A DNA stretch of 59,724 nt, filler included, from Platydemus manokwari (taxonomy: Eukaryota), in NCBI GenBank assembly GCA_037951405.1. It is 6 parts of 6 records of this genome, joined end to end, with 100 filler letters (N's around TTAATTAATTAA, not from the genome) between each part and the next. Parts side by side here need not be neighbours in the genome. Positions count along the whole stretch, not along the records: positions 50,881 to 59,724 come from JBBMOY011340538.1; 5 more parts are not named here. One strand, given 5' to 3'. The position numbers and the translations under genes are program-made. Below the pieces are notes generated by a model that made no database searches, was not told the DNA's origin, and saw only the letters and a program-made list of their open reading frames with translations. Shown in pieces: positions 50,881 through 59,724 of this stretch; within the stretch, counting starts at the first letter, position 1, and every line of letters starts with the position of its first letter.

Positions 50881-52018
50881 AGGTACAAAGTACCGAATCT
50901 CAGCATCTATATAAGCTGATGGATTTCCATCACAATTCACTCTCTAAAAATTCGATAAAAAAACTAAGTGATTCGAGCTGATCTTACTAGTAATAGGAAA
51001 TAATTATCGGTTTAAATAATAATTTTTATTAATCCTATTAATATATTTGAACTCTAAAGGATCTCTTTTGGAGTTAGTAATATCAATAACAAAAATCTAT
51101 AATAAAGTTTTGGGTTCTCACGGTCTCTGTGAAACATTTGTATTGTTTGTTTTTGTGTAATATATAAATTGCTTAATACAAGTTTTTAACAACTCTGATT
51201 GTTATCCTTTTATATAAGAATTTAAACATAAAGCAAATGAACTCACACTGTTGAGTTGACCTAACAACTTTTAACATCCATCATAACCCAACAGAATACA
51301 AATAAATATTATAAAGTGGACTCAAATAACAAAAAAATGTAAAAAATTCAGACTATCATTTCGGCAGGAAAGATTGTCTCAGTTGCAATTTTGACATGAC
51401 AATCAAAAATAGTTACGCGAGTCTAAACATCAAACTATTCGAGTAGATGTCATTTGAAACTTGTAAATTAATCCTGATTAATCTCACCACAAAATAAAAA
51501 TTATTTATTTACCACTAGTATTCAATTATTATTCTACGATTTCGAATTACGAAACAATTCAAGAAACATCACGATAAACCATTTTGCGGTACACTAGTAG
51601 GTAGAATCAGATTTTTAAAGTAAATTCCACTCTCTCTTTGGTAAATTAATAATATCGGCTTGATTCTTGGTGTTTATTAAATAGTGTATATTTATGTTAA
51701 TTAAATATATCTTTAAGATAGCAAAGCGATTTATTTATTACACAACCAGTATTGTATTAGTTTATTATCGATGTAAAAATATTTGTCATTAGCTAAAAAA
51801 ATTGAATTTTAATTATTTATCAACATGGAGAATTGGAAAATTCCATCTGAATATTTTTATTTTTGTCTGTAAGCCTTGGAGAAAGTTAGTTGATGAAATA
51901 ATTCATTAAAGTCAAAGGCTTATACAAAAATATGCATTGAACACAGGGGCAAATATTTTTTAGTAAAGAACTCAAATAATAAATAAATCAGAATCAGTGA
52001 TTAGAAATTAGAGTCACG

Positions 52019-52800
52019 CTAAGTATCTTGCTTCTGTTTTCTCATTTTTGGCATAATCATGTTTTTTTCGACATTGAAAACACTAAATTTTGCCAATTCG
52101 AGGAAATCCAACAGGATACTATGCTGCTCACTTATCCGATATCGTAGTTGAAAGTTGTATTCCGATACGTTGATCATCCATGATTGAAACTGAAAACCAA
52201 TTCGTAAAAGACCAAAAAGCTCTTTCTTTGTCACACAGTAATTCTTTAGTGGCTCATCAACAACTGCGACTAATAAATTATCACTACTTCTAATTCATCT
52301 TTTGTAATCTGACTTAACTCTGCATGAATTATTGCATAAACTTGTGTTAAAATCCATAATAAATGCTTGGTTTTCTTGAGAATAATCCAGAATGAATGTT
52401 TCACACAAAATTGACTTCAATTTCATAAACCTTTCTCGGAATACTTCTGTCCATTATGGACCTCTAGTATTTCAAGATATCTTTGCATAGTTCTTGATGA
52501 ATCTTTTGTAGTAATTTGAAAGACACAAAAATAATTTTAACTTTGAGAAAGCATTTTAGTTCTTGAACATATTTCATTTGAACAAATTTATCAGCTCTTG
52601 TTCTTACTTTGTCTTTGCTTACAACTTGACCTAAGAATTTAATGTCGTCACTTAAGAAAAAATATTTATCTGGATTGATCTTATATACTTCCTATACGCA
52701 ACAGATCGAAAACTAATTCGTCAATTTTCTTCTCCATAATCAACATTGTCTTCTCGGATTTTGAAATTTTGGACATCAGTAGCTTTGAACTTGCGCGATA
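52019..52800 (-). mobile_element. Decayed Gypsy RT-RNase H fragment
   Basis: KINPDKYFFLSDDIKFLGQVVSKD (RT end) and KNYCVTKKELFG (RNase H). Confidence 0.8.
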
Positions 52801-54999
52801 CAGTCCCTTTATACTTCCAAAATCAAATTTTGACACCATTATTATCCTAGCACATTCCTAGATTAATTTAACAAGTTCACTGCCTTAGTCCAACTGAAAT
52901 GCTCGAATAACATTACCTGAGGTAATTATCTGGAAATACTCCATTTAGTTCCGACTAATCGATTGTATTTTATATAAGAGTTGCACCAGAACTATTTCTG
53001 TAATGTTTTCTTGTAATTCGTCATACGAATAAGGATCTGTAAGCTGATAGGGATCGGGTTTGGCCATAGAAATGCAACAAGAGCGTGAGTGGAGATCTAG
53101 AATAAAAAATGAGCAATATTATCGAATGATGTGCTTATGGAAGATGGTAAAACTAGATGTGAACTGTACAAACTTCGGGATTAATGAATCATTCTTTAAT
53201 TTAATGATAATATCAATTATTGGGTTGAATGGATAAAAATCCATTTTTAAAAGCTGCACGATAATTTAATATCTTTCTCAATTACTATGCACATTAATTG
53301 TTAATTAACAAATTCCGGGGATTACAGTTTTTCAAGTGCATAGAATATTAATTTATTATAATGAAGTTTAATATAATTAAATAATATATTAATTAATTAA
53401 GATAATATTTATAAATAATTGACTTCCCTATATTAAGGTTTGATAAATAAATAATATATTAAATTACAAATCAATTGCTCAAACAACGTGATAAAATCTA
53501 AATCTTCAATTTTTAATATTGAAATAATTTTATTTCAAAATTTGATTCCAGCTGGTATTGGAAATTATGACAATAACAACAATAATATTAATAATAATTA
53601 TTATTATGTTTCGTTTCGGGCTCACTACTTTTATTTCTTTTATTAATTATTATTTGATTTGACTGAATTCAACATCTTGATCAGTTCTCAGAGTGAGCTT
53701 GGACCCTCAGATATTAATATGACCTATATTCTTTGTTTTTTCAAATTATATGGAGATAAGCGGAACGGCGTAGAAATCGATTTATTTGACTTAAGCCGTA
53801 TCAATGTTCTTATTATTGTTTCATCGATGTTCTTGATTTTACTATTAGTTTCAATTCATTTAATAATGCAACGAGATCCTTCGTGAATATTGGGCAAGTG
53901 ACCTTTTCAAGAGGGTTTTCCGATAAATAGAGAGAATATGCGATATAAATATTAATATGATTTAAAATGTATTATAGTACTGTTTGTTGTTCCAAAAGAA
54001 AACACTGGGAATATTGTTGGAGCCCAAGGCTCACTGAACTTCACGTCCCAAAATCCCATCAAATAAACACCGCAGAATTACACTTAAACCAAATTAAAAT
54101 AAAAAAATCAAAATCAACAACTACATTAAAACCACTTTACTCCAAATCCCATAATATATGCACATACACACCTGAAAAAACACAACCTCTGATTATGTAG
54201 TGCTGCGGAAATCTAACCATCATTCTTAGCAATTAACAATTATCCTGCTGCTGACTTGACGTGACAATTAACAATCATCCTATCACTGTTAGAGCAACAT
54301 TATCTTGGTATAAATTGATCTTGATATTTAATCATCAACAACAATTAATATCTAACAATTATCCATCATTCTGTCGTTATCTTATTTTTGTATTATTTAT
54401 TGTTATTGTATAAACGCGGAGGAAAAGGAAAGAGTTGCCAAGTAATAAACAATTTAAAATAAATATAACAATATGACTAAAAATATAATTAGAAAGAATA
54501 ATATAGAAATAATTAAAATAATTTAGATTCAATATAGTCAAGTAAATTTAAAAGTACAAACAAATAATAAAAATCACTTCGATAAACAGCCAACGAAAAC
54601 GGCCAAAAAAGTCATCTCAAATTCTTTTAGTTCCATCAATATATAATGATACAACAGATTTATAATTATAGCAAATTAACCGACCTATATAATTGGCTAA
54701 AATTATTGTTACATAACTACTTAAATTTTATTGAATTGTACTAAAATTTTATTTGGGTTTCATTGTAAGTATTTTGTGTAGTAACAATAATATTATTTAA
54801 ATAAAATTATTTATTTTATTATTTATCTGTAATATAACATTCTTTTCATAATATACTTAAACCTTTTGGAATCAGATGCACTTATTAAAAAATATTCATA
54901 AAAATAAATTACTGCTCAAAATATTTAATATCATAAAATTTTCAATTAATTCTGATTTATATTATATTAAATCAAAAGCCTAGTAAACCCAAGAAATAG

Positions 55000-55440
55000 A
55001 AAATTTTTCTTCATACTGACCATGTTACACATGACAAGTTCAATAAGTTAATTTTGTGATCGAATTCTCTATTATCTGCCCCATCTTTTATAGTTCTAGT
55101 AATCTTAACATCTTGTAATGATTTTATGAATTTTTTATTTTTAAATTGAGTATGTTATAAAACTATACAAAATAGTCACGGGAACTACGTAAAAAACTCT
55201 CACACAGATTCAATAAGCGCACGTACAAATAACCTATGAGAAACTTCATTTCTTGATTATAATATCAAAACTCAATAATGAATTTTTTCGAGTTACACAA
55301 TAATTACAGCCAATTCTGACAATAATGCTCAGCATAATAATTTTGGAGTTATGCGTATCAAAGAATAAAAGTCGCATTTATAAATGATAAAATCATCCAA
55401 ATGTCTACAATAAGCGAATTAATAATTGTAAAATTTTCGT
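55000..55440 (-). mobile_element. Collapsed Gypsy pol relic
   Basis: HLDDFIIY and NYCVTRK motifs lie ~120 nt apart. Confidence 0.5.
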
Positions 55441-55568
55441 AATGTAATTCACTTTTAAAATATGTTTCATTAGATGATGAGTACTTTCAATAAAATCAAT
55501 AATATAACACATTCAGTTTTATATTAATAAATCTATTCATGAATATTAAAAATATATATATACATTGA

Positions 55569-57654
55569 TTATCTGAACCGAGACATTTCCTCCAAATACG
55601 ACTTCCTGCGTTTCGGAATTGAAAAGAACTTCCAAATATAAATGATGCCCTCATTATCAACAGTGGCCATTCTTTCACCACTAGCACTATTTCCCATACA
55701 CATAAATTTTGCTGTTTCTAAATAATTATTATGTTATCAAATGTCTTTTTAATCTAATTCCGTTGACAAATACCTGAAATTTCTTTTTCCTTATCGAGAT
55801 ATTCTTCATCGTAAAATGTGAATTTCGAAATACTTTCATCGCAAGTTAAAGCAACCAACATCCTTTTCAAATTGCTCCAATAAAGAAATGTGATCTAGAA
55901 TAATCAATGACAGACATCAATTTCCACAATTCCTTTGTCGATCAATATGTTTTACTTCTGATTTTGTAGTGACAGATCTGATATTGGTTTTCGTTTCCAT
56001 ATCAAAGATTTTTATTTTATTATTCTCATCGCCGGTGGTGATGGCCAAATGGTTCGGATTTTTTGGATTCCACGAAATGGCATTTATGCCACAACCGTTT
56101 TCAACGAAATGTGCAACCGGTTTCGATTGTAAACAATTATACAACCATATCGAAACACTTCCATCACACGATGCCACTGCCAAGTATTTCGAATTCGGTG
56201 ACGGTTCCATCTTCCAGATTTCCTAACAACCAATGAAACGATGAAAAATCCAAAATTTCAATTATCATTATATGATCACAAATAAAATGGCGGGATTTAA
56301 ATCAATATATGCTGGTACCAGAATTGTAATTACAAAACGAAACCAGACATGTGACTGTGGTATTTATAGTCTGATTTTTGATTGGTTCGTTTAATCAATG
56401 TAAAATTTAATCGATACAATACAACTAACTTAACATGTCATACCTGTTGATGAAATTCTGTGCATCCGATCAATGTTTTAATCAAATTCGTGTCATGATG
56501 TTCCATTTTACCGATTGCCGTTCCAACAGTCAATATTTTATTACAATAACTCATAGCTCTGATTCGCTTGTCATGTTCAACATCGGTATATGTCACATTG
56601 AGTTTTCTGACGATTTTTCTCTGGCAATAAATATATGATTCATTGTTCTCGACAGTCACTACCATGTCACCAATTTCCCAAATATCTATCTCACCATAAC
56701 TTGTCCCAACGGCAAGCATGTTTTTCCCGTAATTATTATCGAGCCATTTCACAGAATAAAATGATTTATCATTGCTATCATCGATATTATAGCTATTATC
56801 GCTGTCATCATCGATGGAACACAGTATGATAGAACATTTATTGATTTCATGCCATAACACCACCAAACTATCCAATACAATCGCCAGAAAGCCCTTACAA
56901 CTCCAATCAACGCAAATCACCTCATCACCGGTAAGTTCTTCTATACACGAATCCAATTTTCTTTCTGGTTTCTACAGATATAAATCAATAATTTTACGTC
57001 AGGGATTACAAAATCTTATACCGAGGAACATTCGAATAAACTGCCTTTGCGTTTCAATTTTCTGACTTTTAAGAAAGATTGCAACCTGTCGCCCATTGAT
57101 GGGGACTTTTGATTCATGTTATGTTTGATCATTCTGTTTCTGTTTTTTAATACAACTTTATCCACTAAATTGTCTGTATTACCCGAACGATCAGTGTGAT
57201 CATACGATTGATTCCAATTCATTTGATCATCAAACTCATCGTCTAATTTATTAAAATTCATTGCTCCTCTGTGTCCTATGAATCTTAACCGATACCAAAT
57301 GGATGAATAGCCAAAGTAACGTATTGAAAATCACCTATCACCAATATATCCACGCTGTCTTCTGATTGGATGATTTTGAATTACTCGTCTCGCATTTCTA
57401 ATTAATTCGATACTTTTTCGACGATTAAAAGAAGCACTGCAACCAACTATTAAACGATTTACTAAAGTTAAATAAATAGAACCGTGGTGTTTTATTGAAT
57501 GACTTTTCGGTTAAAACTATAGAATCATCTTTTTTACTATAAAATAAAAGATTTAAATGCTTTTTTATTTTTAATTGCTCTGGCTAAAACATTACCATTT
57601 GCTAGATGATTTTCGACGAGGAGTTTTTGGTTTCTGAAAAATGTCAATATACAT
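55569..57654 (-). CDS. CDC20: Divergent Cdc20/Fizzy-family WD40 APC/C co-activator, paralog 1 (orthology uncertain)
   Basis: Spliced model: KPKTPRRK..GDR|FIGHRGAMNF (C-box-like)..KPERKLD..VDWSCKGFLAIVLDSLVVLW..LAVGTSYGEIDIW..HDKRIRAM..EHHD..FHQQ|EIWKMEPSPNSKYLAVASCDGSVSIW..AISWNP..|ITFLYWS..MATVDNEGIIYIWKFF..EEMSRFR*. All introns are GT-AG and the frame is open. The start codon is tentative. Confidence 0.85.
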
Positions 57655-58522
57655 TAACAAATATTTTTATTAAAAATAGTCCAAAATTTAAAACAAATTA
57701 AAAGGTTTTTAATATATTTTCATATTTTAATTTAATTTCTTTAAGATAAACATTCTCAGCAATAGTTTATAAATAAATAAATTGGCAATGTATAAAACTA
57801 TTAAATTATGGAATGATTAATAACACTTATAAAATTTAATTCTAGAAAAATTTATTATATTATTGATGCTTTGCTAGAGTTTTTGTTCTAGTTAATAGAT
57901 TTAAAATTTATTTTACTGAGATATAATTTTAAAATTACTTCACAAACATATTTATGTCGAAAAAATAAAATCCCTAATCCCTACTTGATTTTTATTACTT
58001 TATTTCTGGTTGATAAATTACATAACCTCATCCAAGTTCATACACGAATTTACTATAATTGCTAACCAACAACTATTATATTTCAGTAAAACACACTACA
58101 TTCTATTTCATATATTTATAAAATTCAAACTTTTTGTTACACTTGAAAATAATAGTCTTACATAATGAAATTAAAAATTACATTTTATCTAAATCACAAC
58201 ATGAAATCCAAATGTTATTAATTTTCTAATTACATGAAAGTAATATTCGCAATTACAAATATCAGTCTAATTTCTAATAAAAACAGTATTTTTAAAATAA
58301 AAACATTAGGAAAGACAAGATAGAATTGACTGATAACATTAACATAGATATTCAATTAGTTATAAATAAAAACAAAATTCATTTTCCATGGTATTATTTA
58401 TTTTATAATACAATAAGGCTTATAACAATGATGACCAATCGAATAGAGTAAACAATATTTTCAAAAATGTAGAGATCGCCGTGATCAAATCAATTACATC
58501 TTAATAATTAAATCGAAAAAAT

Positions 58523-59128
58523 TCATCGCCAATTTTCTAAACTTTTTAGAAAACTAAGTTCATGATTTCGCCTATTTTTCAATTTCTTGATTTCGTTGCT
58601 CTTGAAACAGGTCCATAATCGAAGGAGTTCATCATGACCAATAGTTGCTACTATTTCACCAGTCGGACTCGGTACCATGTTGATGATTGGTCCTTTGTGG
58701 CCAGCTAAATCAAACATTAATGAAAAATTGCTTTCATGTAATATTTTAATGCGACAAGTTTCATTATCTTCCAAAGAAGCTATAGCGATCTCATCATATA
58801 TATCACTCCAATAGAGACATATTATCTGAATGTTGACCGAATCAAATTAATTAAATCACTGAGTGTGACTTACCTGATTTGCTGTGTTAATGGATTTTAT
58901 GCACGATTTCTTGCTGATATCAAACAATTTCAACACATCACTGTTATCAATGCAACACAACAAAATGTTGGGATGTTTTGGACTCCATACAAAATCATTA
59001 ATTTCTTCTTGATAAACGACGGTTGGTGACGATTCTAATTTATTCAACGACCAAACTGAAAGGCAATTATTTTGAGACAGAATTCCGAGTTCTTTCAGAT
59101 TTGATGACCATTTCAAATGACGAATACT
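58523..59128 (-). CDS. Divergent Cdc20/Fizzy-family protein, paralog 2 (last two exons; 5' part not found in window)
   Basis: SIRHLKWS..FVWSPKHPNILL..LKLFDI..CIKSINTANQ|IICLYWS..LAGHKGPIINMVPSPTGEIVATIGHDELLRLWTCF..LKSLENWR*. Two phase-0 introns fall at the same positions as in paralog 1. Confidence 0.85.
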
Positions 59129-59724
59129 CTGTGATAATTGTTTTAATTGACAAATTTACAAAAATGAAATTATTTTCTTTCATAAATACATAAAATTCAA
59201 TTACATCATTCATTTCATATTTTATTGATATTATTTGATCATATTTATACAAATATCATTGTTTTTAGTTATTTTTGTATGGATTTGGAGTTCAGATAAT
59301 AATGGGAAATGCAAACCGAATGATTCGACAATTACAAATGTGATAACAAAGACATATATATAGATTGGGTCACACTATTTTGTGCAATATTAGACCATAT
59401 AGACCAATGTCTTCATAACAATGTTGGAAATAATTATTTAAAATTTATACAGAGAATTTTAAACTCAAAATTCTATCTCACCATTTAGCTTGTATCCTCT
59501 ATATGCAATATAATCATATTATTACAAATATTATTTTTGCTCATGTCAATGACGTATTTCTAATATATGTTTAGAATAACATTAGCAAGAGCTTCAGATA
59601 AAAAATTAACAAATCTAATAAAATAATAAATAATCGAATTAATACTAAAAATAAAATCATAAAATGTTCGAATATCAGAAAAGTTCACAAATAAACAGCT
59701 ATCAATATTGGATTGGGATTTGGA

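Follow-up and report, generated by a model that had tools for sequence, protein, structure and literature searches.

Cdc20 is the protein that switches on the APC/C (anaphase-promoting complex/cyclosome), the ubiquitin ligase of cell division. Only Cdc20 and Cdh1 are ancestral members of their family; Cortex, Ama1, Mfr1 and Rap arose through separate lineage-specific duplications (PMC3195147), and a rotifer, Brachionus, has three Fizzy-clade copies, one of which is specific to the sexual cycle (PMC3701536). The known APC/C co-activators besides Cdc20 and Cdh1 are lineage-specific offshoots that retarget the ligase in meiosis or development. Here we analyse a stretch of 59,724 nucleotides from Platydemus manokwari (assembly GCA_037951405.1; hereafter the window), and specifically its last part, positions 50881-59724 (record JBBMOY011340538.1; 8.8 kb, 28% GC, 0 N; hereafter the piece). 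It carries two WD40 genes with introns, both members of the Cdc20/Fizzy family, arranged head to tail on the minus strand. The reading we favour, and consider rather likely, is that they are highly diverged APC/C co-activators, most likely the outcome of an old lineage-specific duplication, and specialised in a way comparable to Cortex and Ama1.

The overall layout resembles that of Cdc20: a C-box, a linker, a seven-blade WD40 propeller and a tail made of a hydrophobic residue followed by Arg. Gene 1 is intact and has this co-activator layout in full, from a short N-terminal region through the C-box, a linker containing RL.(S/T)FLK and the seven-blade propeller to an FR tail. Gene 2, as it appears on the piece, would be another gene of this sort, represented by its C-terminal half; its tail is WR, and its last blade is somewhat closer to the canon. 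Like Cortex, Ama1 and Mfr1, the two would be divergent extra copies that arose by lineage-specific duplication (PMC3195147) and retained docking elements while drifting far from Cdc20 in sequence. Those three, which derive from Cdc20 or Cdh1 and are restricted to meiosis, go back to duplications in other lineages, Cortex being arthropod-specific and Ama1 and Mfr1 fungal, and orthology is not expected. CDC20A-C of Brachionus calyciflorus are similar in that a single invertebrate genome has several copies from the Fizzy clade, and both genomes are AT-rich and compact. Cdh1 (Fizzy-related) shares family and layout, and gene 1, like Cdh1, has no Mad2-interaction motif, but the pair is excluded from the Cdh1 clade with 100/100 support and lacks the Cdh1 signatures GTADRCIRFWN and DETLRFWNVF.

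We built the model of gene 1 by three-frame reading and splice-site inspection. All six of its introns (158, 51, 50, 221, 61 and 56 bp) are GT-AG, and the joined coding sequence of 1488 nt is in frame and encodes 495 amino acids, ending in ...EEMSRFR before a TAA. Its start is the first ATG following in-frame stops; a further exon upstream of exon 1 is not excluded. The features of the locus are given below, where profile positions, E values and bit scores refer to Pfam PF24807, the CDC20/Fizzy WD40 domain, which was searched exon by exon and has a curated cut-off of 200 bits for a whole protein. Splice junctions are marked with a slash.

57654-55569, minus strand: gene 1, complete; 7 exons, 495 amino acids, ATG at 57654-57652, stop TAA at 55571-55569
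57654-57596, minus strand: gene 1 exon 1, MYIDIFQKPKTPRRKSSSK, ending in phase 2, donor TG/gtaatg
57436-57335, minus strand: gene 1 exon 2, acceptor ttgcag/T, donor AG/gtgatt, ending in ...YIGD plus the AG of the C-box Arg
57268..57339, minus strand: gene 1 C-box DRFIGHR, amino acids 53-59, interrupted by the 51-bp intron 57334-57284
57283-57022, minus strand: gene 1 exon 3, the linker from C-box to propeller
57073-57090, minus strand: DRLQSF at the KILR position, in gene 1 exon 3, amino acids 119-124
56971-56444, minus strand: gene 1 exon 4, N-terminal propeller blades; profile 14-135, E 9e-12, 45 bits
56222-55956, minus strand: gene 1 exon 5, middle propeller blades; profile 137-227, E 6e-15, 56 bits
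55894-55774, minus strand: gene 1 exon 6, from the splice model; its 5′ boundary matches the gene 2 intron position (ITFLYWS in gene 1, IICLYWS in gene 2)
55717-55569, minus strand: gene 1 exon 7, last blade and C-terminal tail, with F-R at 55572-55577, then TAA
57655..58522: spacer between the genes, AT-rich, 868 bp, without Cdc20-like similarity by tblastn
59128-58874, minus strand: gene 2 first visible exon (A), 85 amino acids, acceptor cacag/AGT, phase 0; profile 130-226, E 8e-9, 36 bits
58825-58523, minus strand: gene 2 last exon (B), 100 amino acids, last blades and tail, with W-R at 58526-58531, then TGA; profile 220-292, E 4e-10, 40 bits
59129..59724, minus strand: region upstream of the first visible exon of gene 2, 596 bp to the edge of the piece, without a recognisable gene 2 exon

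In agreement with the original prediction of two same-strand WD40 genes about 870 bp apart, the distance from the gene 2 stop to the gene 1 ATG is 868 bp. Other elements that it had named are also found where it put them: the C-box of gene 1, GDR/FIGHR, is split by an intron that divides the Arg codon AG/A, the DRLQSF segment occupies the KILR position, and the two proteins end in -FR and -WR (R-F-R and TAA for gene 1, N-W-R and TGA for gene 2). A single gene spanning both propellers was considered and is ruled out, both by gene 2, whose tail has the usual length and is followed by a stop codon, and by gene 1, which has its own ATG, N-terminus and C-box.

PF24807 was the top family for three of the four exons listed with profile positions, and the matches run colinearly along the profile; for gene 2 exon A it was outranked by THOC3 (4e-10). 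When gene 1 exon 4 was compared with the sequences of solved structures in the PDB, the six best matches were all human Cdc20 (residues 173-302, E 2e-5 to 7e-5) and the next was S. pombe Slp1, so that Cdc20 provides the best solved-structure matches as well as the best Pfam family. The shorter exons did not discriminate between subfamilies in the same comparison, generic WD40 proteins ranking first, and a search of the ESM Atlas returned generic WD40 clusters only. In gene 1, the C-box lies 94 residues ahead of the LD(A/S) with which the propeller begins, a spacing like that of Cdc20. These matches support the assignment of both genes to the Cdc20/Fizzy family as extremely divergent members. 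That they are chance open frames, or generic WD40 repeats from outside the family, is effectively refuted: although single exons also match WDR5, THOC3, WDR24 and other generic WD40 proteins, the CDC20/Fizzy profile is covered colinearly across exons, the C-box stands at the Cdc20-like spacing of 94 residues from the propeller start, the tail is hydrophobic-Arg, and orthologues with the same introns exist elsewhere (below).

For the relation of the two genes to each other, we aligned both with canonical Cdc20 proteins of animals, 96 in number. Across 172 aligned residues, the two genes have 25.6% identity, and their mean identities to canonical Cdc20 are 25.5% and 27.0%, respectively, meaning that each is as distant from the canon as from the other. 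Unlike Cdc20 proper, to which they show only this 25-27% identity, they retain a minority of the columns in which the canonical proteins reach an invariance of 95% or more (41 of 99 for gene 1 and 25 of 54 for gene 2). They nevertheless share derived motifs: W(N/S)PK(N/H)PN where the canonical proteins have WCPWQxN, (I/L)K(I/L)FD where these have IRxWN, and LYWS, which the canonical proteins do not have. Both visible exon boundaries of gene 2 coincide in codon and phase with introns 4 and 5 of gene 1; the first site reads ...HQQ/EIWKME in gene 1 and /SIRHLKW in gene 2, and the second ...KSE/ITFLYW and ...ANQ/IICLYW. Gene 1 has one extra intron that gene 2 lacks. Common intron positions combined with little residue identity are what had been predicted for the two paralogues.

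In a maximum-likelihood tree of gene 1, gene 2, 25 Cdc20 and 14 Cdh1 sequences, which included no non-family WD40 outgroup, the two genes are sisters (ultrafast bootstrap 97, SH-aLRT 89) and lie outside the Cdh1 clade (100/100), which puts the pair on the Cdc20 side. At 5.5 (gene 1) and 5.2 (gene 2) substitutions per site, against a median of 0.2, the end branches are in keeping with the extreme divergence within the family that the original prediction had claimed. The phylogeny that was to go with that claim came out in part: the sister relationship and the exclusion from Cdh1 are recovered, but the pair's position among the Cdc20 sequences is without resolution. With gene 1 alone, the tree attaches it beside flatworm Cdc20, on the Cdc20 side, without support. 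The derived motifs and introns that the two genes have in common argue that their pairing is real.

Gene 2 is present on the piece as its last two exons, which encode the C-terminal 185 amino acids and end in ...SLENWR, followed by TGA. To this extent the predicted second gene is there, but its 5′ half, including any C-box, is not on the piece. We found no similarity to an N-terminal half in 59135-59724 by tblastn (best E about 7), with gene 1, its two relatives described below and four canonical Cdc20s as queries. Several WD-like snippets at 59129-59420, suggestive by eye, were tried as gene 2 exons and rejected, as their frames differ, an AG acceptor is lacking between them and they gain no tblastn support. 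Because the other seven introns of the locus are only 48-221 bp long, the 5′ half is either off the piece, on the far side of an intron of unusual length, or missing. The lack of any upstream exon in 596 bp, set beside introns of that size, would suit a truncated partial duplicate or a pseudogene, as would the failure to find relatives of the last exon and the unprecedented WR tail. We regard this explanation of gene 2 as doubtful, if worth keeping in view: its exons, with 85 and 100 codons, contain no stop although the DNA has 28% GC, the intron between them is an intact GT-AG intron, blade 7 retains HDELLRLWTCF together with D464 and E465, the tail is of normal length and ends in Arg, and the piece simply stops 596 bp upstream. 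A long-standing decay of gene 2 in particular seems to be disfavoured, because open exons in such AT-rich DNA are found together with the canonical last-blade signature (DE.LRLW.CF, as in Cdc20) and a normal tail length.

When 1.84 billion representative proteins were searched exhaustively by HMMER, with gene 1 exon 4 as the query, five matches were obtained in total. The best two, P0001 and P0002, are open reading frames on short genomic contigs from two other organisms, as follows.

L001 (P0001): a Logan contig of SRR33002330, 1298 bp, 39.5% GC
L002 (P0002): a contig of the metagenome assembly ENA ERZ27257134, 619 bp, 35% GC

Compared with gene 1 exon 4, P0001 and P0002 show 40-41% identity, and compared with each other 53%; both have the clade-specific insertion that follows IWEIG in the second blade of gene 1 (after IWEIGxM in the three sequences). 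The blocks VEHHD and FH(K/Q)(K/Q) are also common to all three, and P0001 shares with gene 1 the linker blocks MNF(N/D)KLDD, NLVDK, IKH.MNQ.SPS and RL.(S/T)FLK. The L001 contig contains two upstream exons, and its exon 2 has the same acceptor phase and donor position as that of gene 1. Its C-box, DR/FMGHR, is interrupted at the position and in the phase of the gene 1 intron (GAT AG/gt...ag/A TTT ATG GGA CAC CGA), and the surrounding context, YIGDR/FMGHRGAMNFDKLDD (stretch YIGDRFMGHRGAMNFDKLDD), is identical to gene 1 at 18 of 20 residues, in proteins that are otherwise about 40% identical. On L002, the start of the orthologous exon 5, EILQMERSPDSKYLAM..., follows an intron at the matching place. 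This conservation of introns in the relatives is the best support for our model of how gene 1 is spliced, as far as genomic sequence can provide it.

Pairwise dN among the three sequences is 0.38-0.50, and dS reaches 2.0 for one pair and is too saturated to correct for the remaining two; the gene-1 type has therefore been under purifying selection for a long time. A scan of JGI metagenomes with an alignment of the three sequences revealed no further relatives of the gene-1 type. Outside this clade, the best matches of exon 4 were the canonical Cdc20 proteins of a tapeworm and of a horsehair worm, both animals with long branches. As a separate observation, gene 1 has an acidic low-complexity loop, DDDSDNSYNIDDSND, early in the propeller (56770-56830, minus strand, amino acids ~193-208), which is absent from both orthologues and from canonical Cdc20.

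The consensus C-box of the known co-activators is DR(F/Y)IPxR, of which the R(F/Y)I binds Apc8B in the way that the IR tail binds Apc3, and the MR tail used by Nek2A is also functional (PMC5717348). Gene 1, with DRFIGHR, matches six of the seven consensus positions: D, the R-F-I anchor and the last R are kept, and the Pro is replaced by Gly. At this fifth position, 105 of 107 Cdc20s have Pro, one has Ala and one has Ser. The end of gene 1 exon 7 aligns with the terminal IR of canonical Cdc20. Tail residues were counted as follows.

First survey (125 stored sequences, mostly canonical Cdc20): IR 99, MR 11, LR 4, FR 3
Cdh1: IR 96, LR 18, VR 1

Across these roughly 240 canonical members, the tail consists of I, L, M, F or V, then R. 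The three FR tails belong to the canonical Cdc20 proteins of Anoplocephala perfoliata (P0003), Hymenolepis microstoma (P0007) and Calicophoron daubneyi (P0018). Other tapeworm and fluke Cdc20s end in MR or LR rather than IR; the IR tail has thus been relaxed to hydrophobic-Arg across parasitic flatworms.

Judged by this survey, the FR tail is a natural variant found in flatworm Cdc20 orthologues and not a hallmark of the paralogues described here, and the docking features that are really unusual are the WR tail and a C-box with Gly, which L001 has as well. The original prediction that both docking motifs had been rewritten was therefore overstated: the C-box differs from the consensus by Pro to Gly only, and FR, MR and LR tails are canonical variants, although a Gly C-box and a WR tail are indeed unusual. 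The FR tail of gene 1 and the WR tail of gene 2 both look functionally plausible. Because the C-box region is extremely conserved and the tails are hydrophobic-Arg, we infer that the ability to dock on Apc8 and Apc3 has been preserved. The R-F-I of the gene 1 C-box would dock on Apc8 and the FR tail on Apc3, in the manner of Cdc20 and Cdh1, and the gene 1 protein would still bind and activate APC/C.

The surfaces that receive substrates are a different matter. In human Cdc20, the Arg of the destruction box (D-box) of a substrate binds Asp177 and Glu465, with Arg174 and Tyr207 also making contact (PMC12401543), and the contacts of the KEN-box in Cdh1 are Asp187, Asn333, Asn335, Thr377, Gln401 and Arg445 (PMC9926468). 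We mapped receptor positions by script against the 96 canonical Cdc20s, in 95-96 of which they are conserved, the only exception being R174 (R in 78, K in 12). The corresponding KEN set in Cdc20 we take to be D184, N329, N331, T377, Q401 and R445, a numbering that combines the structure papers on Cdc20, counting from Lys485 and Lys490, and the alignment of exon 4 with human Cdc20. The states in the two genes are as follows.

R174 (D-box): kept in gene 1; not visible in gene 2
L176 (D-box): kept in gene 1; not visible in gene 2
D177 (D-box): kept in gene 1; not visible in gene 2
P179 (D-box): E in gene 1; not visible in gene 2
D184 (KEN): kept in gene 1; not visible in gene 2
Y207 (KEN and D-box): V in gene 1; not visible in gene 2
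N329 (KEN): C in gene 1; Q in gene 2
N331 (KEN): G in gene 1; kept in gene 2
T377 (KEN): D in gene 1; N in gene 2
Q401 (KEN): E in gene 1; kept in gene 2
R445 (KEN): K in gene 1; P in gene 2
D464 (D-box): E in gene 1; kept in gene 2
E465 (D-box): G in gene 1; kept in gene 2

Gene 1 is thus like Cdc20 at R174, L176, D177 and D184, and unlike it at six KEN-receptor residues (Y207, N329, N331, T377, Q401 and R445). The canonical set of receptor residues for the D-box and the KEN-box is not present, a finding that bears on which substrates are read and not on family descent. Both Asn residues are missing from the L002 orthologue too, where ASSDGS stands in their place, and their loss is therefore old within the clade. 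The prediction of altered degron pockets is borne out by these replacements at positions that are near-invariant (95-96 of 96) in canonical Cdc20.

In the same alignment, the Mad2-interaction motif KILRxxxxP is absent from gene 1, as are a downstream Pro and a CRY box or RYIP, in which it again differs from Cdc20. In the places of the KILR/Mad2 motif and the CRY box it has DRLQSFLKVRKLKRKG and LFECSSKPERKLD. The KILR position reads RLQSFLK in gene 1 and RLETFLK in P0001. Checkpoint control has probably been lost. The propeller of gene 1 is predicted to be without the canonical KEN-box receptor and to have kept the D-box receptor only in part, and because of these changes, together with the missing Mad2 motif and CRY box, the gene 1 protein would present a different set of substrates and escape control by the spindle checkpoint.

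The receptor positions also bear on a plainer explanation, namely that the two genes are ordinary mitotic Cdc20, duplicated recently or anciently in a lineage whose proteins evolve very fast. Our view is limited to this 8.8-kb piece of the genome, the best matches of exon 4 outside the clade are the canonical Cdc20s of a tapeworm and a horsehair worm, and gene 1 falls on the Cdc20 side when it is placed in the tree alone, all of which would fit. We nevertheless consider it quite unlikely that fast evolution alone accounts for the genes. The KEN-receptor positions that are replaced here are conserved in 95-96 of 96 Cdc20s even though these include fast-evolving tapeworms and flukes, gene 1 keeps just 41 of the 99 near-invariant columns, and it has no Mad2-interaction motif. 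Moreover, the end branch of the Gordionus Cdc20, at 3.9, is shorter than the 5.2-5.5 of our two genes, which have a shared stem in addition.

The same residues can be turned to another use, in which gene 1 is a decoy or inhibitor of APC/C that delivers no substrates, or a propeller repurposed away from APC/C altogether. A dismantled KEN receptor, an incomplete D-box receptor and a C-box without its Pro would be expected of such a protein, and the insertion after IWEIG in the second blade and the linker motifs are not found in Cdc20. However, no stretch is better conserved between gene 1 and L001 than the C-box region, which argues for retained docking on Apc8, the propeller is constrained across three organisms, as expected if it binds a ligand, and the known divergent members of the family are activators. 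A decoy, or a function off APC/C, therefore seems to us improbable.

Several observations weigh against the co-activator reading that we favour, or at least against parts of it. The C-box of gene 1 lacks the Pro that is found in 105 of 107 Cdc20s, and this loss may weaken binding to Apc8. Among about 240 family members, of either subfamily, none has a WR tail. Gene 2 has no visible 5′ half on the piece, and a word search with its last exon found no relatives. The PF24807 scores of single exons (36-56 bits), and also their sums, are far under or under the whole-protein cut-off of 200 bits. Finally, the tree pairs two very long branches, a situation in which long-branch attraction may contribute, as the program itself warned. 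With these points taken into account, the predicted lineage-specific expansion of specialised activators is supported in part, by family membership, divergence, the pairing at 97/89 and the receptor changes, and it is the "rewritten" docking that has to be dropped from it. What the sequences show is gene structure, family membership, motif states and conservation in three organisms; under the co-activator reading the proteins would in addition bind APC/C, their choice of substrates would be altered, and they may be restricted to certain tissues, such as germline or stem cells, or to meiosis.

A bolder possibility is that gene 1, together with orthologues from two or more other organisms, belongs to a conserved, unannotated third clade of APC/C co-activators, which would read a different class of degron and would not answer to the spindle checkpoint. 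The traits that would define such a clade are the Gly C-box, the dismantled KEN receptor, the blade insertion and linker motifs of its own. We put this forward tentatively and think it rather unlikely; the kind of gene is a known one, and in that respect not surprising, and what is new is a very divergent member, probably a small clade. Under the co-activator reading, the locus would still offer a natural experiment on what APC/C docking needs (R-F-I without the Pro, and FR or WR in place of IR) and on how substrate choice can be rewired, with residues of the KEN receptor lost and the docking motifs kept.

In the rest of the piece we recognised no Rfam families, tRNAs or tandem repeats, and no gene between a retroelement remnant and gene 1 (53400-54900). 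The features concerned are the following.

52022-52860, minus strand: short open frames in shifting frames, which read like a decayed Ty3/Gypsy-type pol remnant; other fragments than the next have ...FLGQVVSKDKV...-like patterns, Ty3-like by eye
52298-52453, minus strand: one fragment of this remnant, matching RT_RNaseH_2 weakly (E 0.005, under the cut-off)
53400-54900: highly AT-rich DNA, about 1.5 kb, with short open reading frames and no family match

One of the family sequences that we collected, P0022 (the 683-residue 'FIZZY-RELATED 2' of Phthorimaea operculella), contains a Cdh1 segment of about 50 residues roughly seven times in its model, most likely an artefact of assembly or annotation.

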